Shown here in pieces: positions 18,771 to 43,784 of a stretch of DNA of 54,025 nucleotides. The notes under the pieces were generated by a model. The model was not told the origin of the DNA. It saw only the letters and a list, made by a program, of their open reading frames with translations, and made no database searches. The DNA lies in the NCBI GenBank assembly GCA_003427395.1, contig BFEA01000010.1:4763487-4817511 (forward strand), read 5' to 3'. The translations under genes and the position numbers were made by a program. The stretch's first letter is position 1; every line of letters begins with the position of its first letter. Source of the stretch: Chara braunii (Eukaryota; Plantae; Charophyceae).

Positions 18771-18988
18771 GGGCAGGAAAAACCTGAACTAGCAGGGTAA
18801 GCTAGGGGGTAGAGGGGAGAGGAAAAGAAGGAAGGGGAAAAATAGGGGGTAACATAGATGGGAAAACATGTAATGTATGCGGACTAGCCAAAGATAGGAG
18901 TACTAAGAGAGGGAATGGGGTGTCCGGCTATTGTGGGGATCACTACGGCGTTGCAGGATAAGGATCAAAGGCGGGTAAAGGACACGTG

Positions 18989-19758
18989 ATGGCACGAAGG
19001 AGGACGTTCCTCGAGGATCGCCCGCTGGGGATCGAGCCGCCAAGGGAAGTGGCTGGCGGCATAGAAGTCAGCCTACCCACCATAAATAAGATCCGGCACC
19101 CGGTGGTGGATTGGGTCAGGGTCGAGCTTATGGAAAATACGGTTTACCTGGTGACCAAGGTTGAATGGCGTGCGGATGGAGAGGACGGGTGGAACCCGGA
19201 CCCGCGGGGGCATGTGCATCGGAAGGTTGGTTGTATGTGTCGGAGGATGGATGGCGCACGTTCGGGATCCTACTAGCATCTGGAGAAGATTCACTGAGCA
19301 TGTTCGAAGAAGCATGGCATTTAGTGTGGCAGGCGGGGTTCGAGTTCGCAGACCCGGAGTTCGGTGACGTAACAGCGGCCCTTAGGGTGCCCATGACCGG
19401 GAGTTTCAATCTGCCTAGTGAGAATGTTCGAATGAAATTGCCCTCCTTCTTACTGGAAAAATTGGGCGGGCTGGATCTTGTCAGGCGAGCAGTGGCCGAC
19501 CTCGCCACCCTGACATTTGAAGAAGCGACGGTCTACCGGGAATATTATCGGGCCTTCCTAGAGATGGGGCCGTTCGACGGTGAGCAGAGGTACGAGGTGT
19601 TGTGAATACTGTGCACCGTATTCGCCACAAGGCCTAAAGTTCCAGTTGTTAGCGATGAGGTTCTATGGGGCGTCGCCTGAAGAGAAATAAAGCAGGGGCT
19701 GATTTACATAGATGACCTGTACCACCTATACGAGCTATCAAGAGAGGAGGCAGGCTAA
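18989..19758 (+). pseudogene. Accessory ORF C (paralog of A; one frameshift, two stops)
   Basis: MARRR...GGIEVSLP...(frameshift ~19205) EGWLYVSEDG...LPSFLLEKLGG...GPFDGEQRYEVL*...VA*REIKQGLIYIDDLYHLY, ending at TAA 19756. Confidence 0.78.
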
Positions 19759-19902
19759 AAAGAGAAAAGAAAAGAAAAGGGAATAGGGAAAAAAAGGAGG
19801 ACGGACAAGAGGTAGGAAGTTGCCTAGTGGTGGTCAGAGGAATGGATGAAATAAGCAGGACTCGCTTGCTGTTTAAACTGTGCAGGGAACCGCTAATTGA
19901 CA

Positions 19903-20682
19903 ATGGCAATGAGACGCGCCCAGATGTCGAGACGACCCACGCACCCTCGGCCGCCCACGGAAAGCGGAGGCGGATGGGAGGTGTCACTTCCAGCAAGCTA
20001 TGTGGTTCGAGGGATTGACACATAATGGAGAGTTGTGACCTTGGGGAGGGACCAAGTGTTCATGATGGTAGAATGCTTGTGGAGTGGTATGAGGTTCAAT
20101 AGGGGGCCAGGGGACGATCTATATGCTGACTTGAGGGTGACGGGGACCGTATACCTACCGGAAATTGAATGGCACATGCTAGGAACCGAGATGGCACTAG
20201 GACATGGGTTGCTACCAATCTTCCGAAGGGCTGCCTAGGCAGTAAACCGGATAGGACAGGAGGTTCGGGGGAGAAGGAATGCAGGGCTGAGAACTCAGGT
20301 GGAGGTAGGAGGCTGGCGAGAGCTTAGGGCCCCGATGACAGGGTTGTGGTGTCGAGTACCCCGTTTCATGGTAGACTTGGTATTCGGCAGCCTCTCGAGG
20401 GCAAGAGACTTGGTGGACTCGACCCTAACCTGGATCCACCACTTCCAGCTGCAGACGACGGGAATGTTTTACGATGTATCAGTAAGGCATGGGCCGTTCT
20501 GGGGAAATCGGGCCCATGAACTACTCATCGAAATCCTGATATTCGGAGTACCGCGTTTGGCGTTTGAAGAATATGAACCAATAATTATCAGGGAGATAGA
20601 AATGGGAGAAAACTACCTTGTGGGGGTGGCTAACCTGTTCGAAGAACCTGACGAACAGGACAGGCATGAGGGTCCAGCGTGA
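19903..20682 (+). pseudogene. Accessory ORF D (paralog of A; two in-frame stops)
   Basis: One frame from ATG 19903, with stops at 20023 and 20236: GGWEVSLP...FMMVECLW...TGTVYLPE...VPRFMVDLVFG...GPFWGNRAHELL...IIIREIEMGENYLVGVANLF. Confidence 0.8.
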
Positions 20683-21136
20683 GAAAAGTACCGAGGAAGG
20701 CAGCAAAAGTAAAGGCTAGAAAACAAAATGAGGGGTTAGCCATCTACGGAGGATAGTGGTCGGAGTCCTATTCTACCTGAGAATACGACAGGAAGGGACT
20801 AGGAAGACCACTACCGCTAAGGACGCTGAGGGTATCCAAAAGCGGGGAGGCAAAAGGGCCACCATCGAAAGGAGAACCGCCAACCCTGGATATCACCTTA
20901 GAACTGAGGCACGATAATGACAAAACGCCAAATCTCGGTAGCGAGCCTTCCGGCAGAGGGAAAGGTAAGCGACACCTCGCGGAGCGAGAAAAGCTTGATA
21001 AGCCGTCACGACCGATATAAGACGGAAAATATGGGAATGACAAAACATGGAGGACCTTAGGACCTGGGAACCAGGGAAGCTGTGAGCGACCGACCGTTTC
21101 GCAAATTTTTTTTTCCATGTGCAGGATTAGGAAAGG

Positions 21137-23400
21137 ATGGCGTCAGAGAAAGAGGTTGGGAACCTGCAAAGCAATGGGAGTCAGTGCACGGAAAGGAGCA
21201 CGGAACGGAACGAAGGGTCAGTAAGGGATCGAGAGTCAGCAAATCTGGAGGGAACCAAGGAAGACGGGAAGGATCTTTCGACAGGGGAAAGTTTGGGAAA
21301 ATTTGGGGGAAGCAAACGGGGATCCCAGGAGAATAAGGAAGGGAGGGACAAGGAAAGGTCGAGTCCGCGAAACTCAGATGGGGTCGTATCCAAGAAAGTG
21401 AAACTTTCGGATGCACGACGTAAGTTGGTAGAAATAGAAAAGCGAACCGCGGAGTATAAGGCAAAACTTATTGAGGAAATGATGACTGGGAATGAAAGGG
21501 GCCTTCCGGGGGAGGAACTACGAGAGGAGCGCAAGACCAGCCAGGGCGAAATTGGGCACGGAGGGAAGGATAGTAGCTGCCGGGGGACGTGTAGCAAGAA
21601 AGGGAAGGAGAAAAGGGACTCCCCGGACGTAGAAGCGGAGAAAGCTACGAACCCGCCTGCCATAGACAGTGGTGCTGACCGTTTGCCTGCCGCCCCGAAA
21701 ATAACAAAGGGGTGCGATGGACTTTGGAGTCTCAGAGAAAGGGTGTTGGGATGGTTCGATCCGGAAAGAACAACAAAAACCGGAGAGAAGCAGAAGGATA
21801 GCAAGGAAGGAGAGGGGACCAGTACGGCTGGCGAAACGGGTAGCTCCGAGGGAGGTCTCAAAAAAATAGTATCCACCCTCTCCCGGGCATTGAACAAAAA
21901 TCAGGGGTACCTCGCAGATTCCAAGAGGAAACTCACCTTCGATGGTGCAAACATTACGGAATTCCTAATAGACTACGAGAACCTAGCAGCCTTGTTGAAA
22001 TGGAGCGAAGAGGAAAAGATGGACCATTTAGGGCAACATGTGTCACTGAGCCTAGGGAGAGATATAATGGTCATCGTCGCCGTCAGCGGATCCTGGAAAA
22101 AAGCCCGAAATGAAATGATGAGAAAATACTTGAAGGCGGAGAAAATGGCAACAGAAGCTGAACTGGTAGTTGTTCAGAGGAAGAACTATGCAACTTACAG
22201 CGACTTCCTGAGGGCATTTACTCTAGTGGCATTACGGATTCCCGGGGTAACAGATCGGATCATGAGCAAGTACTTCCTTAGGCAGTTCTCTGAGTTCGAC
22301 AAGAATAAGATTCTACCGGCCAACCAACTACCAGCAAGTTTGAGTACACGAGGGACGTTGACTTCAACACGGTGACAGACCTCGCAGAGAAGACAGTGGT
22401 AACCGAGACGTTAGCCTTGCTTAAGGAGGGAAAGGCCATAGACTTGACTGGAAAGACGGGAGATAAGGTGAAGAAGGGGATAGAAAGCCTGCACGAACGA
22501 GTGCACGGGGTCGATAATAAGATAGGAAGGGTAGAAAATGCACTATTGGTAATGCAGGCGCAAGTATCCCGACCCGCCCTCCCGCCCCAAGAGGCCGTAG
22601 TTCCGGCGGCAATAGCTAACCGAGGATACGGTAGGAAGGATCCGGCCAATGAGCTGTGCAAATACTGCACGATGGTCGGAGACTTTTTGCGAGCCTGCCC
22701 AAGACTCAATCACGGTATTATAAGACAGAGGTGTAGCAGGTCACTTAAAGACGAAATTTTCGGACCCCGGGGGGAACGGATAAACAGGAATTCGCCTGGT
22801 GGAATCCGGCGCGTCATTATTGCCCTGAACAATCTTGACGTAGCAGCCGTAGAAGCCGAGCCGGTAGCCGACGTCGTTTGGGACCAGCCGCCGGGGCGCG
22901 GAGCACAAGTCAATTTCATCCTAGAGAGTAATGGACAGGATAGGGTGAACATTGCCACCCAACGGGCAGGGGCGGAAAAGAAACTTATCCGAGACACAGT
23001 AATGGAGGAAGTTGCACGAACCAGCGCGGAACAAGTTGAGCCTGGGACCGGGGAACCAGAGAAAGTCTACGGAAAAACGAGAGAAGAAGAGCCGACAGAC
23101 AAAGTCACGGCAGCGAAGAAGAAATTCAGATATCAGATCTCGATTTTAGCCATGCCACTAATCGATGACACCCTGAGCAAGTTGTTGGGAACCATGGTGT
23201 TTGTATCCTTTCAAACTATGTTGCAAGCAAGCCCGAGACTTCTCAAAGGACTCAGACAACTGCTAACTCGCAGACGCATAGAGGTAGAAGAGGCTCTGGA
23301 ACCGCAGGAAGAGGAAACGGAGGAGGCTGAGGCACCGCAAGGGGTCACCAACCTCCAGAGGATTCCAGAAGACTTGGAGGACCTGGAAAAAACCTTTGCA
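21137..23400 (+). pseudogene. gag with a degenerate CCHC zinc knuckle (frameshift ~22322)
   Basis: LTFDGANITEFLIDYENLA...W is capsid-like. CKYCTMVGDFLRAC at 22657-22698 is Cx2Cx4(H->D)x4C. Confidence 0.85.
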
Positions 23401-26400
23401 GACATTCGCTTAAGCTTGTCAGACCGAGAAGGTGGCGAAGTCATGAGGGCACCGCCCGGAACGAAGCTCAGCTTCCATGCACTGCCCGTGGGAAAGTTGA
23501 AAGTCCAGATTGGGACCCATCATACTGACGCACTAGTAGACGGGGTGTGGAAATCACGCTCATAAGAAGAGACTTCGCAATGATCACGGGCTGTACCGTA
23601 AATAAGGAGGTAACAGGAAGCATCCAGGGAGCCGACGGAGAAATTCCGTTCGCTGGGTACGTCACCAAATGCGAGGTCAAGGCTGGGGTCAGGGAGTCGA
23701 TCTGGTCGTTTCAGCGGATGACTGTAATGGAAGAAATGGACCACGACATAATCCTCCGGAGACCATGGTGCTCCAACGTAGAAATGATAGGCGTGCACTT
23801 GCACGATGGCACATACATGGTAGATATAGAGGACCCAGTGACTGGCCGGGGAGAGCTTCTCCGACTCCTTGGGACAGGTGGAGACCCTCCAAAGGGGAAA
23901 TTGGCAACTTTGTCATCTACGTTCGAGGAGAGTGCTCGAAAAGGAGCATTCGCCCGAACGGAGGGTATGAGAGAAAGAGTGAAAATCATGATCAAGGAAG
24001 CCTTTAGCAAAAAGGAATGGATTAAGATGGGTCTGCCTCTGAAGAAAAAGAGGCAAGAAGACGAAGTCTTAGGAATCATGGTGGCTGAGCAAGAGTCGGA
24101 AGTCAAACTTGGGGCCAGCTTGCCCAAACTGAAGGAATGGTGAAAGGAAACGCCGGGGGTAGCGGTCGAAATTCCGGACCTGTTACAACTCGTCAAGGCT
24201 ATTAGGTACCATAAAGTAGGGGTGGACCCGGCAGCACTTGCCAAATTTGAGGATGAGGTTCGAAAGAGCTACTGTTTGAACGGGAAGGTAGTCAACATCC
24301 AACCCCGCGTCGCAGAAATAACGAAGCCGAGTCCGACCGTTTATTTTTTAGAAGAATGATCCCAGAAGGAAGTGTTCGGAAGTATAAACCAGTAGGAAAG
24401 AAAGGTAAGCTGGTTCCGATCCTAGTGGAGACGTCAAAGGAGGAGGCCATGGAGAAAGAGGAGAAAATTTTGAAGGCAATAAGGGAGAGGCAAGCGGCGG
24501 AAGGGCATCGGATACCCGACGAGGTACCAGACACCATGAAAATATGAATAGATGGGTTCCTAACGGAGGAAGAAACCCGGCTGATAAAAAGGACATGCCA
24601 AGAATTTCACTTGGCATTTGCATTTAATGACCATCAGAAAGGACGATTGGAAGCGAAGCTAATTTCCCCCGTTAGGATCCACACGGTGGAGCATGAATGT
24701 TGGAACGACAAAGGGTCTGCCTACGAGTTCGGAATAGCAGCAGAGGTCACAAAATTACTCAGACCTAAGATAGATTCATTTGTGGTGGAACCCACTGCGT
24801 CCCCCTACGCGAACAAGTGGTTTGTTTTTCGGAAACCCAACAAGACACTCGGGTGGATCCAAGATTTGCAGAAGCTGACTGCAGTGACAATCCGAGATGT
24901 GGGATCGCTTCCACAAGCCGATCTGCTGGCAGAATCTCACGCTGGACGAAGCATTTACTCCCTGATAAACCTGTATTCAGGGTATGACCAGCTGCCACTA
25001 GATGTCAGGGATAGACCATACACTGCTATGCACACCCCTGTAGGGCAGCTGCAGATGCAGGTAACGCCTATGGGCTTTACGAACGCTATGGCGGAAGCGC
25101 AGAGGAGGATGCTTGCGGTAGCCGGGGACATGTTCCCAAAAAAATGCGAACCGTATATAGATGACAATCCTATAAAAGGCGCACACAACAAGGATGAGAC
25201 GGAGGTCCAACCGGGGGTTCGAAGATTCGTCTGGGATCACCTACAGGACATCAAGGATTTACTCCAGCGTTTCCTAGTATATAATATCACCGCTAGTGGA
25301 CCAAAGAGCATCCTCGCGGTCCCAGAGGTGACCATACTAGGGTTTCGCTGCGGGGCCTATAGAAGGAAGCCTGACCCGACAAAAACAGATAAGATCTTTC
25401 AATGGCCAACACCCTTGCGCACCACGACGGAGGTACGAGCCTTCCTGGGAGTGGTCGGGTTCTGGCGGATCTTTATCAAAAGCTTTGCCAAGATAGCCGA
25501 GCCTATTCGCGCGATGATTAGAGAAGAAGGAACTATGGAATGGACCGAGGAAAGGGAAGCAGCGGTCCAGACCCTCAAGGATATACTGACTTCTGACCAA
25601 GTCACCTTGGCAGCACCCTGTTTCAACGACGAAAAAAAACGACCGTTTATTTTGTAGACGGACGGAGGACCTTTGGCAGTAGGAGGTGTCCTAATACAGA
25701 AAGACGAGGAGAGCAAAGAAAGGCCAATTAGGTTCGAAAGTAGAACCCTGAACTCAGCAGAACGGCGGTACTCCCAATTCAAAAAGGAGGTTTTAGCCGT
25801 CCTACATTGCCTCAAAACCTTTCAAACGTACCTATTCGGAAGGCGGTTTATCTTGAGGATCGATCCGACCAACGTCGCGGGAGCATTAAAGAACTATAAG
25901 CCTATAGACCCGACTGTTGGGAGGTGGATAGGCTTTATCTGGCAATTCGATTACAAGATCGAGCGAATTGCGGGGCTCCGGAACAAGGCAGACGGGCTAA
26001 GTCGGATATGCATCACACCGGAAGGGGTAGAGGATGCGGAACCAATCGACGCCTTCTTGGAATACGAGGGAGGAACCCTCGCCGTGGACAATGAGATGAC
26101 GAGTCTCGCATGCACACGAGAAGAATTGTTGATTTAGACTTTGGAAAGAGGGCCGCCTGCCATAGTTGCGGAGCTCAGGGAAGGGTCAGTCACCACAGCG
26201 AGGCGTAGGGATGAAAAGGATTCGTGGGGGGCAGCAGTGGGGCCGAAAGAGGAGTTGATGACAATGGTCGTTGAAGGGGGTCGGCACGCCGTGATGTGCC
26301 TAGTTGAACCGTGGGCGCAAAGGGAGTTGAAGTATTTAGTGAATCAGACTAAAAAAAAGCGAGATATGAGCCAGGAAGGACAATAATTTTTCCTTGTACA

Positions 26401-26520
26401 GATGTATGACGGCATCTTCCGAGAGATCGGCCTGCTACTTATAGGGAACAAGCAGCCTATGGAAGTCAGCCTTAAGGCAAGAGAGGAAGCTGAAAAGTAT
26501 GTCTTGAGGAGCGGTCACCT
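23401..26520 (+). pseudogene. pol: protease, RT, RNase H; frameshifts and stops; integrase core absent
   Basis: PR: ALVDG/EITLI...HDIILRRPW. RT: NKWFVFRK, INLYSGYDQ (first Asp->Asn), PMGFTNA, YIDD at 25154. RNase H: FIL*TDGGPLAVGGVL, RFESRTLNSAERRYS, EVLA, RIDP, NKADGLSR. Confidence 0.93.
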
Positions 26521-26899
26521 GTAACAGTGTTTTCGTTAAAAGTGAAATTGTTTTCATGTTCAATTTTTTTTTCAAGTGTGAAATAACACATATAAGAGAG
26601 GAGCAAATGAGGAAAATAACTATGAAACAAGGCAAAATGGTGAAAACTTAGCATTGGAAATTTTGAGAAATATGTCATTTGGACAATAACATTTGAAAAT
26701 CGTGGAAAGCAATACCAACCATAGAAACTATTGTTAACCAACTATTGTCAACCATCAACAAAGTGTTCAATGACACATACAAACTATTGAGACTATTCTT
26801 AACCATGAACAAAGTGTTGCATGACACATACCACTTGAAACTGTTATTAACCATCAACAAAAGTGTTGAAGTGTTTCATACTCTGCGTATCTGGAATGT

Positions 26900-27708
26900 T
26901 CACTCATGCTGGACCATCGACAAAATGTCGAATGCAATTCTATGCCTCATATACGGGATGTTATCTTGCGAGAAATCGAATGGTGGAAAGTGACCTTTAG
27001 CTAGCAAAGATGCAAAACCTAACATAAAACCACCACAACTACAACCATCATGTTGGACGGGCATCCCATCAAGCGATGTCTCGAAAGATGTCGTAAGATC
27101 GTCCACATGATATGTTTCATGAAGATTTTGACGTTTGAACTCCATTCTAAAAAACGCGGCTCATACTTCAAGCGGTGCGAGGCGGTCGCCGCGAGGGAGA
27201 GAGTCTACAAGCTGGAATTGACACTTGCAACCGTCTATTCTAACACATGCCAAAGCCCAGTGGTTTCCAAAATTCAAAGGGATAAGTACGAAGTTAAAAT
27301 CAAAAATATTTTTTCCCCTGACCCACTTCATTCCCTCACAGTAAGCAATTTCTCTCGACGTTGCGGATGCCAATCTGACATAGAAAAAAGAATCTAAAAT
27401 ATACACAGATGGAATGTCCTTCGGACTCTCGTCTCTAATCTCTCCTCTAAACATCAAACTCTCTCTGGCATTATCGTTGTCGATCTGGATGGCTAGCAGA
27501 TACAAATTCACGGCTTCATCGTTCAACCATCCTTCTGCTTCAATGATGACCATGATGTCTTTCTTTTCCACCTTCCAGTCACCCTTGTGAACAACAATGT
27601 CGTATTCTTCATTATCTTCACTGGTGCTCACAACCCTTTTAACATACTGCATCTCGACCTCAGTGAGGCGTTGCGTTGCTAGAGGAATCTTGAACGACCA
27701 GCCAGACA
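26900..27708 (-). pseudogene. Ulp1/SENP-family cysteine protease (peptidase C48) domain, one in-frame TGA
   Basis: GWLNDEAVNLYL, ILDSFFY, VLIPLNFGNHWAL (His), LVDSL (Asp), PVQHDGCSCGGF (Gln/Cys), FDFSQDNIPYMRHRI. ORFs 27161..27724 and 26900..27145 are in frame. Confidence 0.93.
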
Positions 27709-28733
27709 CTGCATAGAAACACACAGGTAAACAACAACGGTATGTTTAAGACTTCCATACAAGTGGTGCCTTTCCGAAAATACATATAAGAAGCGAACAT
27801 GAGTTCATTACGGTGCTTGTTTGCGTACTTCGCTGTCGTTGCCGCTTTCCACAATAGACAAAGTGCAAACCTCACGGTGCAATTTCTTCCCTTGTTTCGT
27901 CCCTATCCCCACAGTTGTAAACATCCGTAGAGCAGCTGGCTTCACAAATGGGATCGTCACATGTTCGTCTCGTTTTTTAACTGTTTTTGGCAACAACGGC
28001 AACGTTGACAAGGCTTGCAAACCACGACATATAATATTCTTGTCTTTGTTCCTTTGCGAGTGCACGCGAGGCGCTTTCCACAGTCCTTTACGCATGTCTG
28101 CACGTTCATCAATGTAGAGACCACAATCATGACCGATAGTAACAAGCAATATGAGTGATGTTCGCTATAACATTATTAAAAATCCACCTAAACAACGTGA
28201 ATGTCAATGAACATTAATAGCAGTAAAATATTAAGAGTCAATCTTGTACTTCATAATATGAGTGACGCTCGTTATAACATTATTAAAAATCCACCTAAAC
28301 AACGTGAATGAGCACGCTACATATATGCAAATAAACATCGAGTATTTCCAATTAAGTGCGGCAGAAAAAAATGAAAAATCAACTCATGTTTTACACAAAA
28401 TATTACATAAATTTTCCCTACGTGAGATAAGCGCTCACCTCTGCGACTAACTGCAATTTTCCCTTCAATATCGTCTTTTTTCGCACCTCCCAACTGCCTT
28501 TCTCTGACAGGGGATTCTTCGATGGTTAAAACTGGAACAACTGGGCTCAACTGTTGGAGAGGAGTTTCAAGTTTGTTCTCTTTTCCTTCCTCCACAGGTG
28601 TGTGTTGCTCTGGAGTAGTCCGTACAATATGGCCTTCATCCTCTTCGATGTCGGGTGCTTGGATTGCTGCTTTTCCCATGAGCCCCTAAAGAGTGTCGTT
28701 TCTTCGTGCAGTAACACATACAACAGGCGAAAC

Positions 28734-29063
28734 CTGAGACCCTCCTTGCGCCTTCTCTGATGATATCGGACTTCGAAATTCGGTAGGAATGTCGAAGTCG
28801 CTGCCGAGGGTCTCTCCATGGAATAGACTGTTAGACTCGACTTCCGGTTCGAGCTCCCCCACAAACATGGTTTCCTCCATTGTTGTTGCCGTTCCGCATG
28901 CAATAGGCGCATCCTGAGACCCTTGTCGTGNNTTCTCCGTCAATATCGGACTTNGAAAATCNGTAGGAATNTCCAAGTCGCCTCTGAGTGTCTTTTCATC
29001 GAGCGGAGTGGTAGGCTCGACCTGCGGTTCNGTCACCCCCGCAAACATGGTTTCATCCATTGA
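28734..29063. repeat. 180-bp (60-codon) coding tandem duplication
   Basis: CAAACATGGTTTC at 28862 and 29042; MDETMFAG...GSQ vs MEETMFVG...GSQ. Confidence 0.85.
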
Positions 29064-30724
29064 TGTCCTAAGTCGCCCTTGACTTTCCAATCCGCATGAC
29101 ATAATATCCATAGACTCCCACATATGGTCATGCGGGCTGCCAATATTTGCCTTCTCGCCAACAGGGAAGACACTTGTGCCGCTGGCATCATACCATACAA
29201 CATCTGTCATTGTGGTACTTGTGAGTGTGAGTGTCGTGGTGGCACTTAGTCCACCTTCACAATCATCAACTTGTCTTTCTGCAGTGGACACTTTGACTTG
29301 CTGCGAACCACCGACATCGATACGTCCTCCTACAGGACCGCCGCTTCCCACGTGCTCGCGATGTGGTTGACCTCTTGTAGCACCTCTTGACGGCTGATTG
29401 GACGCAGGCCCTTGTGATGTCCCTCCACCTTCACCACTCCCTTTCTTATCATTTCCTCCCTCACCACCACTTGGGTGTCCAACTCCCTCTCCACTCGCAC
29501 CACCGCTAGAACCTTGTCCTTTTCCCCTTCGGTGTCGTCATCCTCCTCAATATGCTAGTTGTATCCATATGCCGGGCTTGTTACTCTATCATAAAATTTT
29601 TCCAAGTACTCAAATCTTCGTAATGCTTTGAGTTCCTGGAAAATCTGCTGCTTCCTTGTGTCCACTCTTGATGGGGAAACATTAGGATTGAGTCGAGAAA
29701 GCCGCATCTTGATCTGATCCTCTGCATGTGTATAAAACTTCGATTGCGCTATACGTCTGTGAGAACAAAATTGCCACTGCCCGTCTTGTTTTATTGCCAT
29801 CACCCATTGTCCTTTCCCCAATGCCGGTTGAAAATGTTGTGGATGCCACACGATGTCGTGACCCCACTTATCATCATCCATCATTGTATGGTCATCTCGA
29901 CAAACGATAGGCCCCATCAATAATGCGATGTCCGCGGGGATCTTATCCCCAATCTCATACTCATACTCCAGCACCTCTGCAGGTTCAGGTTCTTGTTGTG
30001 CGGTATGAGAACGAAGGAAACGTTGCAACAAAGCAGGGCTTTGTGCAAATCCTGTGAAACTCGTTAATAACTCGGGGGAGGGCTCAACACCGAACAAAGC
30101 TCTAAAGGCCGCCGCTGGATCGGACATCAATCCTGCAGATGATGACACTGTCGTTGCTAAAGCGGTCGTGCTGTCAGGAGGTGTAGTCAGTGGAAGTGTC
30201 GTTGTGTCGGCAAGCACGACACCAGAAATTCCAATTGAAGGAGTTCCTGATGACGTCCCTGTTGTAGCCATCTTTTGAGAAGACGAGGTACTTGTCCTTT
30301 CCCTTTCGCATGCCAAGGCCGTTTGCAAAGTACCATCGACACTTTCCTCTTCCGAATCTTCAGCATCGAACTCTTCACCCTCCGGAATGCAAGTTGCGTA
30401 GGCAGAGACTGTGAAAGCACCGATTCGTTCACCAAAATACATGATTTCCAATCGGTCGAGGAATGAAATCTCTTTGTCTGAAGAAGCTTTATGATAACCT
30501 CGTAGAAGGGTCTCAACTTTTCGCCTGCGAGCAACATATGCACGGTCTCTCCTGTTTTCAGGCCGCATCTCGAAAAGGAACTGCCAGATGTTCAACATAT
30601 TTTGACCCACTTTGTGCACAAAATCACGAGCTTCATCATGGCGGGGTGGTGGCTTGATGAATTTCGCATGATAATCTCGAGTGTCGACCATCTTGTTTAT
30701 GAATTGTACAAGGAAGTCGAACTT

Positions 30725-31465
30725 CATGTCCTCTCCTTCCAAAACTACGCAGTGGCAATTACTTCTTAATAGCTCCCACACCAAAGCTGCATGACCCTTT
30801 CCCAAAAACACAATAGCTTCATCCACTGGACATAAGTGTTCCAACGTCTTTACCATTGCATTTGGGTCCCTCTCCATTCCTTCATATACAACTTTTTCTT
30901 TCGGCTCCATACCCGCCATTTTCCACTTCGTTGGCAGAAAGTTCTTCTCCAATACATCCGTGAGCACCTTTGGCTTCCGCTCTCGCCGCGCAAGTGTGGA
31001 AATGTCAGTTGCTCGAGTACTGAAAGATGGTCCCGTTGGTTGGATATCTTCGAACAACGGTATTGTATTCCGGTGGTAGTCCCCATCATTGGAATACATA
31101 ATAAGCACCATTCTGTCCGCATCTTCCAATGACAAATTTGCAATCTTATACGGATGGCGGACCTTCTGTTGTTGTTGGCGAGTCCACTTCGCGACTGACA
31201 TGTGAATATCCGACTGGACCACCCGCCTGAAAAAGGTCAGCTCACAGGACCGCGGAATGAAGCATATCAGCGTCCAATACTCCCCTCCCACCATTTTCAT
31301 GAATTGCCAGAGTCCATCAAAAATCGGCTCTGTCCACTTGGCCATTTGAGTAGGATGGCACAAATCAAGCACTGTTGTGTAACATGTCAGATGTCGGATG
31401 ACCTCTTTACAATCCATGACATCTGAGACATCGCTAAGATCTGATTGGAAAGGAACAAAAATAGA
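30725..31465 (-). other. Beta-class N6A/N4C methyltransferase-like domain
   Basis: Motif order IV-TRD-I: MDCKEVIRHL..TTVLDLCH (DPPY position, degenerate), then ERDPNAMVKTLEHLCPVDEAIVFLGKGHAALVWELLRSNCHCVVLE (FxGxG SAM-binding loop and terminal acidic residue). Confidence 0.55.
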
Positions 31466-32534
31466 CTTCACATCTTGTTTTAGAAAGTGTATATATTTCG
31501 CTGCCCGGATAAGCGAATGCTCTTTGAACCTCGCATTGCTGACCTATGCAACAACTTCTCCACAAAACGCTCGAACTCTTTAGGACATTTCTCAGCAAGT
31601 TTTTTGGTTTTCTCAAAACCTTGTTCCCCTTTCTCATCTTGGCCTCCCAGAGTTAACGGGAATGACTTTATCCAAGGCAAATCTTTGAAATGTTGCCTCT
31701 GATCAACCCATCTCTCATATGTAAGGCCCTGATCGCGATAGTTGTCGAATAAATCAACCAGGTCCATGAAAAAAGGGTCCTTCCAATCGGACGGCTTCTT
31801 CGCCGCATTTGAAACAAAGACGAAGTAATGAAGCATTCGCAACATCACTCTCTTCGTCTTCACGACTTCAACATACGTTTCCATTGAATGCAACCCGGCA
31901 ACTTTCGCAGCTTTGCTTTGCTTTGGAACCAAGATCACAGCACCTCCTAAGACATCACACAAGATCTACAGTCGCTCACGCCTGCCCAAAGTGGAAAGTG
32001 ATTTCCATGACCTGACATCCGGATCATGAACAGGAACAAGGAAACCAGGTCCTTTCGTGCCTGGTATCCAATACACAGGAACTCTAGATCCATTCTTCAC
32101 CTCAAAACCGGGACCCGACTTTTGTGCTTTTCCTGCTTCGCCTTGTTTCGTGACAGGCTTCACCGCGTCTCTTCCAGATAGTTGTCCGCTTTCCCAAGCC
32201 GTATACACCTGCTCCACTTTTTCAAATACATCGTCAAATGCCCTAGCTAGGATCATGTAAGGACCGAGGAAGTCCGACCATTCCGAACTCCACTGACCAA
32301 GTGACATACTAATGTAATGATGTATACCAGTCACTCTAAGCGCCTCCCCTACAAATTTCCTATATTCCGCATTTTTGATATCATCTCCCTGCCCACCTTT
32401 GGCATCAAGACAGTCGGACGCCTTCCATAACTTCCTGATGTCTCGAACTACAATGCTCTGATGAGGCGGAGTGTTCCATTTGTCCTTTGCATTCTGGAAT
32501 GTGCTCAACGTTCCATAGTGATCCATGAACTGGT

Positions 32535-32965
32535 CCGGATAATAAACAGGTCTGGCCGTCCAATAATCTAGCCGCAACTCTTTTGACACAGCCGGATTTT
32601 CGCGAAAACATCTCCTTGCTGCCGCCACATTGTGTTGACCACTGAGAGGGTACCAAAAGTACTTATCCAGCGGCTTTTAGTGGAAGTCGTCAGGAGTAAC
32701 CCTTCTTGCTCGCACAACTTCACCCTTTGAGTTTGTATGAAGCTGGTCATGCACTGCCACTAACAACAATATAGGTTTCTCGTATAACGGACTTGTGCTC
32801 AACCCTGTCCTGCCTGTTGTCCTTTCATGAATAGCCGCTTCACCTGATATTACCATCGCTTCGTAGATCTCATCAACGTGATTTTGGCCGAGAAATCTCT
32901 GGTTATATCTAAACTCTTCATCTGGAATGTCCATAATCTTTCGGAATTCGACGGTGATAAACTGT
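32535..32965 (-). other. ParB/sulfiredoxin-like N-terminal domain
   Basis: VEFRKIMDIP..YNQRFL..HVDEIYEAM..G..KPILLL...WYPLSGQHNVAAAR...WTARPVY follows the ParB-N pattern (box I-like; GxxR box reads GQHN). Confidence 0.6.
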
Positions 32966-35009
32966 GTCTCGCTCTTTTGGGTGTCGTCTGGATTGAAGTC
33001 CAGAAAGAATCCCTTCCCGAGATGCAAAGTGGCTGGCTCACTTGGCGACAGTTGCAATCTTGATGGCCGCATGACAATTTTGCCTTTCCCCTCATCGCCA
33101 GACTGTGGCTGTTCAGAGGCGGGGAAAACTGTCGTCTTCTCCATCGTACCTCCCTTTGCTACTCTCTTTTTCCGCGCCGGCTTTTGTTTTGCAGCAGCTT
33201 CTGCATCGCGAGTACGTTGGACTGCTTCATCCATTGGCAGTGGCTGCACTTGTCTTTTCAGAGGTTGCTCCTTCCTGCTCCTTTTTTGGTCAATACTTTT
33301 TCTCCTCTCCTGCCTAGCTTTCCTTTTCTTATCCTCAACAGCCACAACCGACGATGATGTAGTTGTACCTTCTTTGGCTCCTGCATTCTCCTCTCTTGTT
33401 CAAATTTTCCACCGGGTTTGTGTTGCAGCTTGTCCACATGCCAACCCTCTTCTTGCTCCTGCACATCTTCATAGTGCTCGTCATCGCTCTTCTCCTTCCG
33501 CTCAATGCACAACCCAGCATGAACACTTGAGTGTCGTCGTCTCTCTAACTCCTTGGCTTGTGTCCGTTCATGGCCTTCCCTCTCACCAAAAGTTTGTTCA
33601 CTATCCTCTTTTTCCTCTCCTTGGCTTCCACCGCTTCTCTCCTGTGAACCTTCCTCTTCGTCTTCCCTCTCTGTTCCTTCTTTGTTGCTCCCTTCCTCCG
33701 AATCTCCGAAATACAAAGGCTTCTCATGACGTTGCATAGCACTGTACATGCTCGAGTGCTCCTCATGCCCTTGCACAGCGGCACCATACATACTCGACGA
33801 ACGCACAATGTCGTGCAGTACATCCAATGGCTTTTTCGCTGCTAAACCACGGATCTTCTTCGGCGCCGGCGGTGGAACCTGTGCATGAGCGGGGCCCTTG
33901 GAAGCGATCTGACCCGCTTTCGGGACAATCGCCGTGGACGCTGACGGCCGGAGAGATATGGCACCCACAGTTGGTCGCATTATTCCCGAAGACTGTCCTA
34001 GTGCAGCTGCTGACATAACACTTTTTGGTTTTGTCACGGCGTCATCCTTGTGAGCCACAGCCCCATGGCCTCGAATCACATTCGCGTCGAAGAACGCGAA
34101 CACTTCAATTAGATCAGACAATCTCAATTGAAGACTCGGATCTGGATTGAAGATATCCAAAAGTGATTTACCATATCCCTTATGGTTACTCCACCTGACA
34201 ACATGTTTCACATCCGGAACTCTCTGGCCTTTGCCGTTGAGGAGCATAGGCAATTCGAAAGTCACAAACTGATTGTCCCTCCCCACCCAAGACGCAATAC
34301 CGTCGACCGGTCTGAGTTGCTCTCACAAAACGACGAACAGAAGCAGACCACTTCCAGCCTGCCCGATATCGCCTGCCCAATCCAACATCCATAATTTGTC
34401 TTTGTAGTCAACAACAGGCTCGACGTCCGACACCCCATGCACAGACCTCTCGGCGGAGCCCGAATGCCGCGCTGTCTCTTCTGCGCATTGTCGACGACCA
34501 CCACTAGATCCTTGACCACGAACACCACCAGACCCTTGACCACGACCACCACCAGAACCTTGAGCACTCCCCACAATCCGGACATGGTGTTCTCCCTCCC
34601 TGCCTTGATCAGATCCCCGAGGGTGACTCCGCGCACCTGAAAGAGGTGTACCTGAAAGAGGCGTACGTCGCTGCACAGGCGTCTGCATCGCTGAGCTCGA
34701 TGACCGGCGCTGTACTGTCGCCCTAGATCCTGGCGTCTCTTCTTTATCCACCACGGTGACTGGGGTTCCCTTCAATTTTTTGGGCGAGTGCTCGACACTC
34801 GCAGAGCTCCTGGTTCTAGAGCGTTTCGCTTGTTGCTCTGTAGCATCCATTCTGCAGAGTCGAGTGGAGTCTAGTAACAGCCGAGCTGTCATGCCAAAAC
34901 AATCAACAAAGCAAAGCAGTAAATGCGAAACTCCTTCAAGGTGGACAAACATGCATTTGCACCACCCACTCTCAGAAGACAACTTTCGAATGACATTTCA
35001 CAGGATGAG

Positions 35010-35800
35010 GTTATCGTTTCCAACACGACAACGCCGAGAGACGAGCAATAGCCGAGACCTCGTAATCGTGGCGGACACGACAAGACTACTAATAGTCGAG
35101 ACCGCGTTATCATGTCCGACACGACAACCCGGATGGATATCAGTAATAATTCAGCTGTCGTTCAGAAACACATTCGACGGACAAATCCCCTTCGATCAAC
35201 ACTGCACTAGATAGCATTGTCGTGTCAGACGCGACAACCCGGCACAACGACTGGTGGCAAAGACCCACCCCCTACGATTGTCGTGTCGAACACGACAAGA
35301 GCATCCTGAGGAGCATAGTGGCAAACACCCACCCCCTGCGATACGACCATGCCGGAGAGCGGGTTAATGAGTGGGCTGTCCCGGCGAGCAGGGAATGAGT
35401 CCTGTGAATTGAAGAAGCGGACGAGTACTTTTCTTCAGTGGCTGGCGGCATCGAGCCACAGAGTCTTCAGTGCGCAGGACACATCCCCTCCTCGCCACGA
35501 CAACTTCGGGCAGTGGCATTGAGGAACCCTTAGTGATTGTCGGGTCGAACACGACGCGCACTCATTTCCGGAACGGTCGTGTCAAACACGACGATGATTC
35601 TCTCGGTTTCGACGCGACAGTCCCTGAGGGCGGGTCGCTGCCTCCATTGGAGGTTGTCAATAACGACTCGTGGTGGAAGGGCGGGTATTTCTCTTTTTCA
35701 GAGAGTGCAGATTTTTTTCACACAGAAAGAAGCTCTTGCGCAAGATGGTCGTGTCGAACACGACGATGTATGTCGAGGTTGTTGTCCTGTTCGACACGAC
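35010..35800. repeat. Palindrome array 1 (GTCGTGT-N3-ACACGAC), about 9 copies
   Basis: For example TTGTCGTGTCGAACACGACAA at ~35278; further copies near 35110, 35217, 35537, 35576, 35747 and 35782. Confidence 0.85.
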
Positions 35801-36473
35801 CTACCCCGGCATAAGGACAAAATCCCTCGACTTCACAGTGCAAGATGTAGAAGCATGCACCATGCACGAACCCACCTGCGTCACAGTCCACAATAATAGA
35901 ATGGGCTCAGATCAGAGAGCGAAACATTTTACATTTGCGCATGTGTCAGAAATCCATAGTACACTTTCGACAATTTCAGGTCTGCAGCACAAAAGCGGAA
36001 GGGGCTGTTTATGATACCGAAAAGACACAGAAGGCACGCGGATAATGTTGTAGTTGCCGCGACACATTCAAGAAATGCTTTGAAGGCACACATCACTGTA
36101 AACGTCCGACGCCAGAGACTGACAACGAAGCGGAAGACACTCTTCGCATGTACGAGCACAAATACACAGGAAAGAAATGTTTCGAAGGCATGCATCACTG
36201 TAAATGTTCAACGACCAGGCAACCGATCACTTGAAACGGCCTGTTGCCCCAGTCCAAGGTGACGAAAAGAAAGGGGAAGAGATTGTTTCCGATGCCAGAG
36301 ATTGACAATGAAGCGGAAGAAAGTCAGAGGCAGGTCCGACAACAGAACTCGTAGAACGACCAAAAGGCAGGGTGCCATCTGTGCAGAACTCGTAGAACGA
36401 CCGAAAGGCAGGGTGCCATTTGCGATCCCGAAGAAGCGACGCTCAACTTGCTGACGCCCAATGTTTAGAACAT

Positions 36474-37390
36474 CTACCGATGACGGCGAGCTGTTGCAAT
36501 CATGCAGTCATTAGCTGCTCGAACAGGACATCCGAACGTCAGACACAACGGCTCCTCGACAGAAGCATCATCCGCAAACATTGAAATGTATTTCATTCGC
36601 ACAAAACTGGTCGTGCCGGCCAGAGACCTGCCTATGGCATCCCGTATAGATGACGCTTTTGTCTCAACTTCATGCCATGCGTCGACGTCGTCCACCTTAC
36701 CCCCGATTGCCAAATCCCATCTCCTAGCGATCTCTCGTGTAACTAAACCCACCCCGCGTTTTCCTATCTCCAACTTGTTCCTGGACACGTACACCACAGC
36801 GTCTGTGAGGGTCCTACTATTGTTGGAACACGCTATGCAAAGGATCCTACAAAAGAAGAACTGTCCCATATGCAATCTGACGCAGCAGTACGATACGACT
36901 CGAGGCGATAGCCCAGGAGATCGTAAAGGATACTGATCAAGAAACTGACAATGCCTGGCACATTTAGCAGCTCCCGTTTCAGTGAACGACACCATGTGCG
37001 AGGCGAGACAGTAATGTATCTACAGCCGAGGACGTTGAAATAACGACTAGAATTGAGTTTTTTGCACAGGTGTCGCAGACGCACTGAACCTAGGACTTCA
37101 TAGGGCACTGAGATAAGACTTCCGAACTCGAGCATATTAGTGAACTCATAGTCTTTCGCCCACGGGCACTCCTTCAGCATCCTTTCCCACTGATGCTCTC
37201 CCCACGAGTCCAGGTGGTCATTCTTCCACGGGACGACCCTCATCCAGGGATCAGACTAGAAGTCCTCCCGAGTCGCCCCGTAGATTTCAGTGGACTCTCC
37301 ACACCCACGCAAGCCCACCACGCACGGTGGAAAAGGGTAAGCCAAGTTCTCGTGCCGACCAGCAGGGGTGATCCAATCAGAGATGTCCAT
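36474..37390 (-). pseudogene. Unknown gene, ~305 codons (one stop, one frameshift)
   Basis: ATG 37390 (MDISDWITP...) is in frame with 36833..37243, and a frameshift at ~36997 leads into 36474..36995. The peptide is complex and non-repetitive, and is flanked by palindrome arrays. Confidence 0.5.
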
Positions 37391-37629
37391 CGCGATATGC
37401 AAGCGCCCTGCACGACACAATGAAGAAATCAGCAATAGCTAGCAGGAAGAATCCCACTGCTCCAAGGAGTAGGGACAAGGTTTGCGAACACAGACTCGGA
37501 ACCGAACAACGCTGGAAACATGTTCTGCACTGGCAGTTGTAAACATGTTCTGCATGGCAACCGCACGACCAACGCTCGACCTTATGTTGCTGCAGGGATG
37601 GGTGACACTCAAATTTCGACAGGGTGCTG

Positions 37630-40600
37630 CTACTGTCGTGTCGAACTCGACAACCACCGCACAACACTCAGGTGAGATGCCAGAGGCCCCCGGTCTTCGC
37701 CTTCGACATTTCGACCGCCCCTGGATCGTCAGCGCAAAGCGTCCATTCGGAATGGCGACATCTCGAGCCTCACAACCGCATCCCGGTGGTTGTCGAGTCG
37801 AACACGAAGACCGCCCGGCAACATGTCGCACCCCAACTGCACGACCAATGCACGACCTTATGTTGCGGGAATGGGCGCCATTCGAGTTTAGCCAAGGTGC
37901 TGCCACTGTCGTGTCGAACCCACAACCACCGCACAACATCCAGGTGAGATGCCACTGTCGTGTCGAACTCGACAACCACCGCACAGCACTCAGGTGAGAC
38001 GCCAGAGATCGTCGGCACAAAGCGCTCAATCGGGACGATGACATCTCGAGCCTCACAACATCCTGGTGGTTGTCGAGTCGAACACAAAGATCGCCCGGCA
38101 ACATCTCGCACCCCAGGAGCTCGGGTCGGTGGTTGAAAGTGCGGTGTGGTTGTCCTGCATGGTTGTTGTACGGGGTTTGTTGGAATTTTGCCAGGGAGCC
38201 GTGATTTTCATGTCCAACCCAACAACCACCTCACTGTACTCACACGGAGTGGTCGTCGTGTGTGATTATCGAGTTCAACACGACGAGTGTGATCATCGAG
38301 TTCAACACGACGACTGCGGTCGATGTACGCACATCGTCGTGTGGACGACGTGGAAGCGCCGTCGTCGTGTTCAACACGACAACTGACCAGACACCGGGCT
38401 CCGGTTGTCACTCTGAACACGACGACTTCGGAAAAACAAAGGTGTGGTCGTGCAGACGATGTTCGCCCCCGCGCACACACCGTTGAAGACCCATCATCAT
38501 GTTGAACACGACAACTGACGGGACACAAGGCTTCGGTTGTCGCGTTGAACACGACGACAACCGGCGGCTCTTCCACAGTGTAAGGGCGGGGGGGGAACAT
38601 CGTCCACACGACGACCGCAACCTTGTTTCTCCTCTGTCGTCGTGTTCAACACGACAACTGACGAGACACCGAACTTCGGTTGTCGCGTTGAACACAACGA
38701 CTACCGACGTGCCGGAAGCCGGTTGTCGTGTTGAACATGACGACTGCGGAGAAACAAGGGCGCGGTCGTCGAGCGGACGATGTGCGCCCTCGCGCATACG
38801 CCGCGGAAGAGCCGTCGTCGTGTTCAACACGACAACCAATTTCTGGCGCGTTGGTAATTGTCGTGTTCAACGCGACAACCGAAGGCTAGTGTCTCTTCAG
38901 TTGTCGTGTTCAACACGACGACGTCAGTATGTGGGGGGGCGCACATCGTCCTCTCGACGGCACCCTTGTTTCTCCGCAGTTGCCGCGTTGAACACGATGA
39001 CTAGCGACGCGCCAGAAGTCGGTTGTCGTGTTGAACATGACAACTACGGAGAAAGCAGGGTGCGGTCGGCGGGGGGCGATGTGCGCCCCGCTCATACATC
39101 GTGGAAGAGCCGCCGTCGTGTTGAACACGACAACTGACGACATTCATGGCTTCGGTTGTCATGTTGAACACGACGGCTCCCGACACACTAGGGTGCGGTC
39201 GTCGTGTTGAACACGATGGCTCCCGACACACTAGGGTGCGGTCGTCGTGTTGAACACGACGGCTCACGACACACTAGGGTGCGGTTGTCGTGTTGAACAC
39301 GACAACCACAGCGCATCCCCCACGTATGCAGCGGGGAGGAGTCATCGTCGGGCATCGCCCGCGACAATACTCTCGCTGGTCATCGTGTTCGACACGAAGA
39401 CGACGACATTACGCTTCCTTTGCAATGCCGTTCCTCGGGCGATTGTCGTGTTCGATTCGATAATCGCAGAGTTTGAAGTGCCACGTGGTGCGTGGTGATT
39501 GGAAATCATAGGATCCGGACGAATCCTCACCGTCTGTTCGCTGTGCTCGCCTCACAGAAAGTTGCTCCACGATCCGCACTCTAACTCCCGCTCCGGACGA
39601 GCCTCCTCCACGCCTTTGGAACAGCGCTTGCGTCGCGGCGCGGTGAGAAATCACTCACTCTCCAACAGCCGACCCGACAGTGGGTGTCCGATAGGTCTTC
39701 GCCGCCGGCCCACTCGCTCTCTTCTTTCACGCCCTCCTCCTCTCTTGCGCTCACGGACTCCCAACAGCTCTGTCGGCCCCAATCACTCTCTTCTCTCACA
39801 TGAAACAAAGAATACCTAATGGAGGAAGGCCATATCCTCCTTATATACTGTGCAGCATGTCCCCGGCCACAGCGTGACGACCGTCAGATCGTGTCGAATC
39901 GATGGTGGCGATATCGACGCGCCGCAATCCAATTCCGACCTGCGCTGGAAATGGAAGAGGGGCCCCGTCGTCTTTATATACTCCGGAGCCCCTCCCGCGT
40001 TTCATCGACCGTCCGATCGCATCGACCCGACGGTGCCTGGAGCCTGTCCCCTTTCGCGGACCTTCAACCTTCCCGTCGTCGCATGCCTACGGTGCCAAAC
40101 GGGGTGCCGATGGCTCGGTGCCACAAAGGGGGCACAAACGACTATTCTACTAGATGGCGCGACCCTCTTTTCGTGAGCAGATGTGCTGCGACGAGCGCTT
40201 TTGCGTTCACGTTCCCATCGTCGACGATCGAATGTGCTGGGGCGAACATTCGTCCATCAGACAAACTGCCACTAGCGACGCAAAGCGGCTCCATCGTCGA
40301 CGATCGCGTGCGCTGGGGCGAACATTCGTCCGTCGGACAAATTACTACTGGCGACAGGGGAGACGTAAAGCGGGTGCTGCGCTAATTGGCGATCTGCTTC
40401 TCAAAAGATCGTGGTCCATTGCCCAGGTAACTTACCCACTATCTGAAATGTCTATCATGAATATTGCTGTGCTTGGGAAGGGTCCATGCAAGTTGTCGAT
40501 CTCAACGATCAACGGTCACGATCTGTCCTTTGATTTTGACGACGTCAACAAAGACCCCGCATTGCAGCTCCTGTTGCTTGATGTGACCCCTCTAACCTCA

Positions 40601-41360
40601 GTACACCACTGTGCTCGTCGTGTCAGACCCGATAATGCCCGGATTGTCTGATGCTCAAAGATATCTATATGTAGAATTGCAATGCACCAAGATGAAAATT
40701 TCGTCAGCCGTCACGATGACCGATTGTATGGTCGTCGTGTCCAACCCGATAATCGACGGTTCCAGGTGCCCGAAAAGTCCGCTGCATGCAATGGTCATCG
40801 TGTCCAACCCAATGACCACTTACATGGTCCTCGTGTCCAACCCGACAATCAGACGTTCAAGGTGCCCAGAAAGTCCAGTGATGACGTCCTCGTCGAGTCG
40901 AACTCGATGACCATCACGTCGAGCTGCCCGGCGACCATCCCCTAACAACCTCTGCATGACGTNNNNNNNNNNNNNNNNNNNNNNNNNNNNNNNNNNNNNN
41001 NNNNNNNNNNNNNNNNNNNNNNNNNNNNNNNNNNNNNNNNNNNNNNNNNNNNNNNNNNNNNNNNNNNNNNNNNNNNNGTTGCGGTATTACCCGATCTGAA
41101 ACTCTTCAAGAAAGTCCAGTGATGACGTCCTCGTCGAGTCGAACTCGATGACCATCACGTCGAGCTGCCCGGTGAGCGTCCCCTTACAACCTCTGCATGA
41201 CGTTGCGGTCGTGCGCGATCTGAAACTCTTCGGCCGCTCGACTTTCGTCGTCTCCAAAATACAACCTGCCAAACAGTCATGTCGCCGGGCAATTGTCAGT
41301 CAACATATGACATCACTTCCTCCTGTGCATGCCATGGTCATCGTGTCCAACCCGATGACC
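37630..41360. repeat. Palindrome array 2, about 30+ copies (densest at 38260-39460)
   Basis: GTCGTGTT(C/G)AACACGAC near 38363, 38637, 38816, 38901, 39114, 39243, 39285 and elsewhere. Degenerate TCGTGTCCAACCCGA copies lie at 40617-41360. Confidence 0.9.
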
Positions 41361-41619
41361 GGGGGTGCACGGTGCCCGCAAGGTGCCCAAACAAACACAG
41401 CGTGAGGTGGTTGTTACATCTAGACACGTGATTGCCAGCCATGCGACTGACTGTGCGTCGTGGTCAGTCCCAAAACTGAAGATTGACTCACCGTATAAGG
41501 TGCCTGACCGAAGGTGGGGCAAATATTGGTCAAGCAATGACATTGCACATTCTGTGTATCTAGAAACCACAGCCTTCCATGTTCAAGGGACTTGTGGGCC
41601 TTCGAGGAGAACATGTCTC

Positions 41620-42880
41620 GGCATTCTTATGTCTCTTCTGTGTTGTCTTTTTATGGATAGCGTATCAACTGTATAGCATATGTGCATCGACATTCTTATG
41701 TCTCTTTTGTGCTGTCTTTTGATGGATAGAGGATCAACTGTATAGCATATGTGCATCATGGTCAATCCGAGGAGTGAAGACTTCCTTACCCTATCAGGTG
41801 CCTAACCTGCCATTTGTGCATAGTCGTTAATCCCAAAGACTGCCTCAGCCTACCAGGTGCCTAAGGAGCGACAAATGCTGGACATACAGTCCCCTACTAG
41901 TGTAGTGTCAAGTGCCGAACCTTCCATGTTCGAGGGAATGACAACCTTCGAGAATACTTTCTGTCTATGGAAACTGTCGTGTGTCCCCTATGAGGATACA
42001 GTCCCCTACTAGCGACAAATGTTGAACAAAAACTGGAGACTGCATCACCCTATCAGGTGCCTCATGTGCGGTGTGTGCATGGTAGTCAGTCCCGAAGACT
42101 GCAAACTGCCTCAGCCTATCAGGTGCCTAACCGAAGGAGCGGCAAATGCTGGACATGCGTCTACTGTAGTATCAGGTGCCTAGCCTATCGGCAAATGTTG
42201 GCAAATGCTGGACATGCGTCTACTGTAGTATCAGGTGATTACCGACATTCGAGGATACTCTATGTCTGTGGAAGCTGTCGCGTGTCCCCTACAATAGTGC
42301 TTTTGGTGGTCCGAACATGAAACTGCCGACTGTTTGGCACATACAGAAGGTTCTCAAAGCGAAGTGTGCCAACAACGTGCCAACGTTGTCGGTAATCTGC
42401 ACAATGCGTTTAGAAGTCGTCGTGCCAACAACGTGCCGTGTGTGCATGGTAGTCAGTCCCGAAGACTGCAAACTGCCTCAGCCTACCATGTGCCTAACCG
42501 AAGGAGTGACAAATGTTGGACATGCGTCTACTATAGAATCAGGTGCCTAGCCTTCCACGTTCGAGGGAACGACGACATTCGAGGATACTCTGTCTGTGGA
42601 AGCTGTCGCGTGTCCCCTACAATAGTGTTTTTGGTGGTCCGAACATGGAACTACCGACTGTTTGGCACATACAGAAGGTTCTCGAAACGAAGTGTGGCGA
42701 CAATGTGCCAATGTTGTCGGTAATCTGCGTGTCCCCTACAATAGTGCTTTTGGCGGTCCGAACATGGAACTGCCGATTGTTTGGCACATATAGAAGGTTC
42801 TCAAAGCGAAGTGTGGCAACAACGTGCCAATGTTGTCGGTAATCTGCACAATGCGTTTAGAAGTCGTCGTGTTCGACACG
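41620..42880. repeat. Complex hierarchical tandem repeats (68-, 119- and ~367-bp periodicities)
   Basis: CATTCTTATG at 41623/41691; GGTAGTCAGTCCCGAAGAC at 42081/42448; GTGTCCCCTACAATAGTG at 42282/42610/42729. Confidence 0.85.
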
Positions 42881-43226
42881 AGGGAGGTTGTGGAGTTACT
42901 GATGACTGTCTTCGAGAGCGATTCCGATCTAAGTTTCTGAACAGATTATAATGATAGGGTTTTATAGTTATGCTTTTGGCAACGGTGGCGTCATGAATTT
43001 CTAAGATTGGTTGTTTGTTTCTTCACCACAAGAATTTAATTGCCCTATTCAGTATTGCGTAGTCGGTATCCAACTCATGCGTTGGATAATTGACAACCTT
43101 TGACATTCATCTAGGAAAACACGGTGTTCCTACCTTCATAATATTAACCGACTTATTTGTCCTCGCAGACACATTATGCCTTGGGGCACTTCGTATCGGA
43201 GAGCTGAATATCCAATGCCGACAAGT

Positions 43227-43784
43227 ATGGACTGCGTGGCATCTAACATACTACTGGATGCGAATTGTCATCATGATGCGGATATGCACGACCTCGCTGT
43301 GTGCTCTCCACATTCTGAAGATGTGATTCGTGACAATATCTTCAGCTTCAACACGCCTGCTCGTAAGAGAACGAGAGAGTTTGAATTCGATATTGCTACT
43401 TGCGAGAGCAGCTCCCCTGTCGTTCAACGACCACGACCGACAATATCACCTGAATCCGATAATGCATGTCATAAAGCTGATGACTGCGACACTGACATTT
43501 CAACATCTGATGTAGACCGCGTCTTATGGGTGCCCAGGGATTCACTCCAGGATCCTGAACATGATTCTTCCCACCATTACGTTGACTTTCGACTTGCCAG
43601 AGAAAATGTGACCTCAATTGAGGAGATGGAAGAGGATGGGCGCTCGAGTGCTTCAATTTCTTCTAGTGCCGATAGTTCTCCTGATAAAGACAATCATCCA
43701 TGCAATGATGATGTCAGCAACTTTGACAATTGTCAGCGAAATCATGACGCCAATGCTTTTAAATCAAAGTGGCTCCGAACGTGA
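43227..43784 (+). CDS. Possible D/E/S-rich N-terminal gene fragment, divergent from the giant gene
   Basis: Open for ~185 codons from ATG ~43227, acidic and disordered, with an NLS-like PARKRTR. No recognisable domain. Confidence 0.3.
   Translation: MDCVASNILLDANCHHDADMHDLAVCSPHSEDVIRDNIFSFNTPARKRTREFEFDIATCESSSPVVQRPRPTISPESDNACHKADDCDTDISTSDVDRVLWVPRDSLQDPEHDSSHHYVDFRLARENVTSIEEMEEDGRSSASISSSADSSPDKDNHPCNDDVSNFDNCQRNHDANAFKSKWLRT

Follow-up and report, generated by a model that had tools for sequence, protein, structure and literature searches.

The stretch analysed here (54,025 nucleotides of the Chara braunii genome, contig BFEA01000010.1, positions 4,763,487 to 4,817,511; hereafter the window) carries on its minus strand, between positions 26900 and 34850, a series of coding pieces that form one collinear gene, a real gene that is dead in this copy. 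It derives from a giant cut-and-paste DNA transposon family of C. braunii, which belongs to the Sola type (DUF7869 transposase) and whose conserved second gene is present here in decayed form. A host gene was considered and rejected in favour of a transposon gene. An earlier first-pass annotation of the window had proposed a gene of a selfish element, and this holds insofar as the gene belongs to a transposon, while the carrier is of the Sola-type DDD kind and not a Mutator or Zisupton element or a virus.

That the pieces belong together, beginning with the Met at 34850 as the first-pass annotation had supposed, is seen from intact paralogs that read through the breaks and from relatives at loci L001, L003, L005 and L006, whose alignment with the N-terminal piece starts at this same Met. 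A single open reading frame (ORF) in CBR_g4202/P0001 spans the site of the frameshift near 31500, CBR_g5685/P0017 reads through the whole core of the gene, from its ParB-like to its methyltransferase-like part, and the whole core is also contained in one intact ORF of 1419 aa from a JGI metagenome, with an Ulp1 ORF downstream. Homologs found by word search were all C. braunii gene models, mostly 55–79% identical to the window. The window copy is broken eight times in the main exon, by five stops (Table 1) and by three frameshifts near 33350, 31500 and 29500, and once more, by a stop, in the Ulp1 domain. A motif resembling a SUMO-interacting motif (SIM) lies in the main exon slightly upstream of its donor. 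The coding linker also contains a tandem duplication of 180 bp (28700–29059).

The nature of the carrier was established by comparison with other loci. The same order is found in all seven Chara loci (palindromes, orphan gene, main exon, short exon, Ulp1, terminus, unrelated flank), and Ulp1 lies downstream of the core in the four divergent loci as well, so that its expected presence beside other copies was borne out in 7/7 close and 4/4 divergent cases. In the window, the insertion of the element at 26523 splits a Gypsy pol frame. One relative, L006, is complete: its two inverted termini are separated by 18 kb and flanked by a target duplication of 4 bp (AATA), and this is the single case where terminal inverted repeat and target duplication were seen at both ends. 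The other (left) end was not found within the window. A divergently oriented DUF7869 transposase (Sola-type DDD) lies inside L006 (E 2e-55) and is also present in L003, L005 (E 1e-22), L007 and the distant L011; the window retains its N-terminus alone, the catalytic part being missing. A Mutator, CACTA or Zisupton carrier is ruled out, as the linked transposase is DUF7869. An endogenous virus or prophage was likewise discarded, as no viral hallmark genes occur in the window or the loci and no viral relatives were obtained in phage, viral and metagenome scans.

Table 1. Features of the element in the window (positions of the whole stretch)
Feature	Position	Strand	Remarks
Conserved element terminus (inverted-repeat end)	26523..26560	.	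Same end in 7 related loci, flanking DNA unrelated
Terminal exon B: Ulp1/C48 SUMO-type protease	26900..27708	-	PF02902; His/Asp/Cys motifs; stop at 27163
Terminal exon A: basic peptide, 96-97 aa, conserved in-frame stop	27808..28097	-	Acceptor kept in 8/8
Intron with conserved phase-1 donor	28098..28438	-	Donor G/GTGAGC in 8/8 copies (slash, splice site)
Main exon of second gene, ~2100 codons, decayed	28439..34850	-	Stops 34325, 32679, 31968, 29557, 28688
Beta-class N6/N4 DNA-methyltransferase-like fold	30700..31470	-	Motifs IV (DLCxP) and I (FLGK-G/A/P-HA) degenerate
Candidate ParB/Srx-like domain	32480..32970	-	Split by stop at 32679; motifs YN-Q/H-RxL, GQH-N/T, invariant Asn
34 dispersed palindromes GTCGTGT-N3-ACACGAC (<=2 mismatches)	35013..42882	.	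Nine gaps = 43 bp
Orphan gene, ~280 aa, frameshifted in window	36474..37400	-	Between two palindrome clusters
N-terminal remnant of divergently oriented Sola-type transposase	43176..43784	+	Homologous to ORF preceding DUF7869 core in L003, L005, L006, L007

At the 3' end of the gene, one phase-1 donor (28439/28438) faces two phase-1 acceptors (28098 and 27709), each conserved in 8/8 close copies. In 12/12 loci the donor is located close to where the main ORF ends, and the intron that follows it is conserved less (identity 0.33–0.63) than the next exon (0.71–0.90). In the aligned copies the short exon is closed by a stop whose position does not vary, and no phase-1 donor within it is conserved. 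A model with three exons would need a donor at 27875 and was discarded, as the copies do not share that donor. Four divergent subfamilies repeat this plan, with the donor, a short homologous peptide closed by a stop, and then Ulp1; L009 and L010 have both acceptors in phase, and L012 has one. NCBI gene models choose one acceptor (P0011) or the other (P0005 and P0009). A conserved donor facing two in-phase acceptors is most simply read as giving two isoforms, and the splice-site conservation suggests alternative last exons, one producing a tail isoform and the other an Ulp1 isoform. The first-pass annotation had joined Ulp1 to the upstream pieces through stops and frameshifts; introns separate it from them instead, a conserved stop closes the exon in between, and the arrangement is no simple in-line fusion. 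Of the three-domain fusion proposed there, the Ulp1 part is supported by the in-phase acceptor of its exon, the fused product being probably just one of two splice isoforms.

The last exon provides the sole Pfam match of the gene (PF02902, Peptidase_C48; E 6e-10 and 4e-5 on its two pieces). The protease had been described as intact: the His-Asp-Cys residues and the oxyanion Gln are indeed present, while the window copy is broken between Asp and Cys by an in-frame stop (27163). In L009 the Ulp1 exon starts with two acidic SIM-like motifs.

RNA reads were placed on positions 26550–28925 of the window. Transcripts are faint: polyA reads, whose first mates map to the + strand (the sense orientation in most stranded libraries), were obtained for the Ulp1 exon, with hardly any for the end of the main exon. 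Contigs of 280–511 nt identical to the window copy come from runs only guessed to be RNA, and the contig of one relative continues unspliced over the second acceptor. A few RNA reads of opposite orientation were seen over the short exon and first intron (27990–28229).

The three motifs quoted by the first-pass annotation for the core were all located in their places. A beta-class N6/N4 DNA-methyltransferase fold, with the motif order IV...X-I-II, is moderately supported, by four weak but agreeing tests. Motif IV occurs as DLCxP, DLAP, DISx or DMSx, with loss of the prolines and the aromatic residue, and motif I is degenerate, while the acidic residue of motif II is conserved. The catalytic form (D/S/N)PP(Y/F/W), including DPPY and SPPY, was found neither among the 15 commonest variants of 68 family sequences nor in 24 aligned sequences, so that the domain is probably a pseudo-enzyme. 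Nothing significant was obtained for this part in Pfam, NCBIfam, PHROG, PADLOC and PDB-sequence searches. The two AlphaFold2 models of the analysis, from shallow paralog alignments, had predicted local distance difference test scores (pLDDT) of 46 and 41, and Foldseek gave no match in PDB and BFVD. A faecal-sample phage scaffold (L018) is not part of the methyltransferase reference set. An S-adenosylmethionine-binding and perhaps dead methyltransferase had been predicted; the fold and the loss of the catalytic motif agree with this, and a match in the profile libraries did not materialise.

The ParB identity of the other domain, proposed from its motifs, is unproven. The family motifs YN(Q/H)RxL, GQH(N/T) and an invariant Asn resemble the three ParB/DndB boxes. 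The nucleotide-binding arginine of GxxR is missing, as the family has GQHN or GQHT in place of the consensus GERR/DGQHR. The predicted ParB/Srx profile match failed to appear in any hidden Markov model library: the same Pfam, NCBIfam, PHROG, PADLOC and PDB-sequence searches returned nothing significant, hhalign comparisons with six phage ParBs gave scores within the shuffled range, and this region of the model (pLDDT <40, shallow paralog alignment) had no usable structural match. By language-model features, the nearest clusters at 0.95 were those of DUF3723 of fungal Starship elements and cnidarian ones, with 181–187 of 256 features shared with DUF3723. We treat this link as a lead only; DUF3723 showed no Pfam match to, and no alignment with, the ParB-like part, and no paper linking DUF3723 to ParB was found.

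The core profile matches about 200 clusters (50% identity) among 1.84 billion proteins, and 19 of 20 sampled clusters were from C. braunii, the remaining one being from a JGI metagenome. The metagenome member L009 (JGI 3300064063) is intact and about 30% identical. Relative to other copies, the ratio of nonsynonymous to synonymous substitutions (dN/dS) is 0.07–0.20 for the ParB-like and methyltransferase-like parts where dS is unsaturated, 0.30–0.43 for Ulp1, and 0.3–0.6 over the range of Ulp1 and short-exon values. Judged from these substitution ratios, the core is under strong purifying selection, and such low values imply that the gene has long been useful to the element. A prokaryotic or viral ancestry, as proposed earlier, is plausible from the fold, and no sequence relative among prokaryotes or viruses came to light: tblastn searches of phages and plasmids gave chance matches only, and pattern scans of viral and metagenome sequences, with bacterial genome contigs outside the scan, gave no relative beyond those sampled.

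The palindromes are restricted to the element, with none in the window outside 35013–42882 (0.1 expected in resampled DNA), and their spelling varies by subfamily. Their place is central, around the promoters and away from the ends of the element. The orphan gene keeps its position in L001 and L003–L007 and has no Pfam match; its protein is a candidate palindrome binder. In L010 and L011 the linkers contain repeated units carrying the palindrome of their own subfamily.

Of several possible explanations, we favour, with about an even chance of being right, one where the core binds DNA as a sequence-guided helper without catalysis, and where silencing is countered by local removal of SUMO through the Ulp1 isoform. 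The main exon would encode a scaffold composed of the ParB-like domain, a helical part, the pseudo-methyltransferase and the SIM-like motif, predicted to recognise the palindromes of its own subfamily. The choice of last exon would then yield either a scaffold that ends in a short basic tail or one fused to Ulp1, and the latter form would strip SUMO from silencing or chromatin proteins at the element, such that the divergent promoters and the transposase stay accessible. CACTA TnpA/TnpD and VANDAL VANC are element-encoded helpers that bind short repeated motifs of their own family, with alternative splicing in CACTA; they have no domains in common with the Chara protein. By analogy with TnpA and VANC, such a sequence-guided helper may allow copies of the element to be recognised as its own and protected. 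Several points count against this explanation. The ParB identity is a motif-level candidate for which profile and fold tests gave no match; in-frame acceptors were not found for L011, nor for the short exon of L012; the SUMO specificity of the protease and its anti-silencing effect are putative only; and the palindromes may be bound by the transposase or the orphan protein rather than by the core. The RNA junction between the Ulp1 exon and the upstream ORF that the first-pass annotation led one to expect was also not seen, as there was no splice junction among the matches listed in the RNA runs, where depth was very low.

The low coverage of the main-exon end by polyA reads, the contig unspliced over the second acceptor and the conserved stop of the short exon would all fit a separate third gene for Ulp1 with its own transcript, the ParB-like/methyltransferase-like gene ending in the short basic exon and never being fused. 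We consider this unlikely, as the in-phase Ulp1 acceptor is conserved in 8/8 close and 3 divergent copies, the first Met of the window's Ulp1 exon is not kept in the relative P0005, and oligo-dT libraries favour 3' ends in any case. An equally doubtful possibility is that the core is a transposition cofactor, which attaches to the palindromes and brings the 18-kb element into a compact or bridged form, enabling the Sola transposase to pair ends that lie far apart, with Ulp1 tuning the SUMO state of the transposase or of repair factors. ParB-type proteins bridge DNA at palindromic sites, which speaks for such a role. So do the small size of normal Sola1 elements (1.5–2.8 kb, PMC3845634) compared with 18 kb in the Chara family, and the nearest feature match, DUF3723 being a conserved gene of giant Starship elements (10.1101/2021.12.13.472469). 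The palindromes, however, lie mid-element around the promoters and not under the ends, and the ParB fold is unproven.

Less probable still is a catalytic role, in which the methyltransferase-like domain would use a non-canonical active site to label the palindromes of its element as self by N4-methylcytosine (4mC) or N6-methyladenine (6mA). The fold and the acidic motif-II residue are under strong selection, and bdelloids have co-opted an N4C methyltransferase of bacterial type (PMC8885841), but the lack of prolines and aromatic residue in motif IV and the degenerate motif I argue against activity. The helper explanation can be extended, speculatively and with little confidence, to a ParB/parS-like self-recognition, where a ParB-type clamp would load onto the family palindromes, the pseudo-methyltransferase would read or shield the DNA, and the spliced SUMO protease would switch anti-silencing; the same ParB-like module would underlie DUF3723 of Starships and be a shared device of giant eukaryotic elements.

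The Chara family shares with Sola1 transposons the DUF7869 DDD transposase, inverted ends and a 4-bp A/T-rich target duplication (PMC3845634). It differs from the known Sola1 elements, which are 1.5–2.8 kb long and have AWWT targets (PMC3845634), in its length of 18 kb, the second gene, the orphan gene, the palindrome arrays and its flanks, which are A/T-rich with AWWT fitting only some of them. A C48 protease on a plant cut-and-paste transposon is also known from ULP1-carrying Mutator-like elements (KAONASHI) and from CACTA (PMC2528002); in Chara, Ulp1 resides on a Sola element, apparently as an alternative last exon of a pseudo-methyltransferase gene. No paper was found that joins Sola with Ulp1, or that deals with Sola in Chara or with this family. 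Phage fusions of ParB-N with N6/N4 methyltransferases, and beta-class methyltransferases such as M.RsrI, CcrM, EcoP15I Mod and YhdJ, resemble the Chara protein in domain order, beta motif order and a weak structural and profile match, but there is no sequence-level relative, and the Chara protein has about 320 extra residues between the domains and has lost the catalytic motif. Bdelloid N4CMT likewise represents a bacterial-type amino-methyltransferase fold in a eukaryote and in a transposon-silencing context (PMC8885841); it is an active host enzyme, whereas the Chara domain is element-borne and lacks SPPY. Starship DUF3723, the 0.95 feature match, is likewise carried by a giant mobile element as a conserved accessory gene; the transposition enzyme is a different one.

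Sola elements have so far been known as small one-gene transposons, while the Chara family is old, diverse and 18 kb in size and keeps a second gene. It offers testable models for why Ulp1 proteases recur on plant transposons and for how large eukaryotic elements recognise their own DNA, and many unnamed C. braunii gene models are thereby explained as transposon pieces.

Several further observations concern the neighbourhood of the element. The Ty3/Gypsy element split at 26523 (16900–26520) encodes gag, protease, reverse transcriptase and RNase H, and has several unknown ORFs upstream of gag (17000–20682). On the other side, the transposase breaks off after codon 202, and other repeats come next (43784–44150), with possibly a retroelement end near 44150. 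Directly upstream of the transposase remnant lies a second repeat family with units of 59–367 bp (41750–42870), common to L001 and L007. The complete element L006 has another unknown ORF between the transposase and its left end (26723–27280, minus strand), and L012 has a convergent piece of a Sola-type transposase downstream of Ulp1 (22484–22912, minus strand), which represents either another layout or a neighbouring element.

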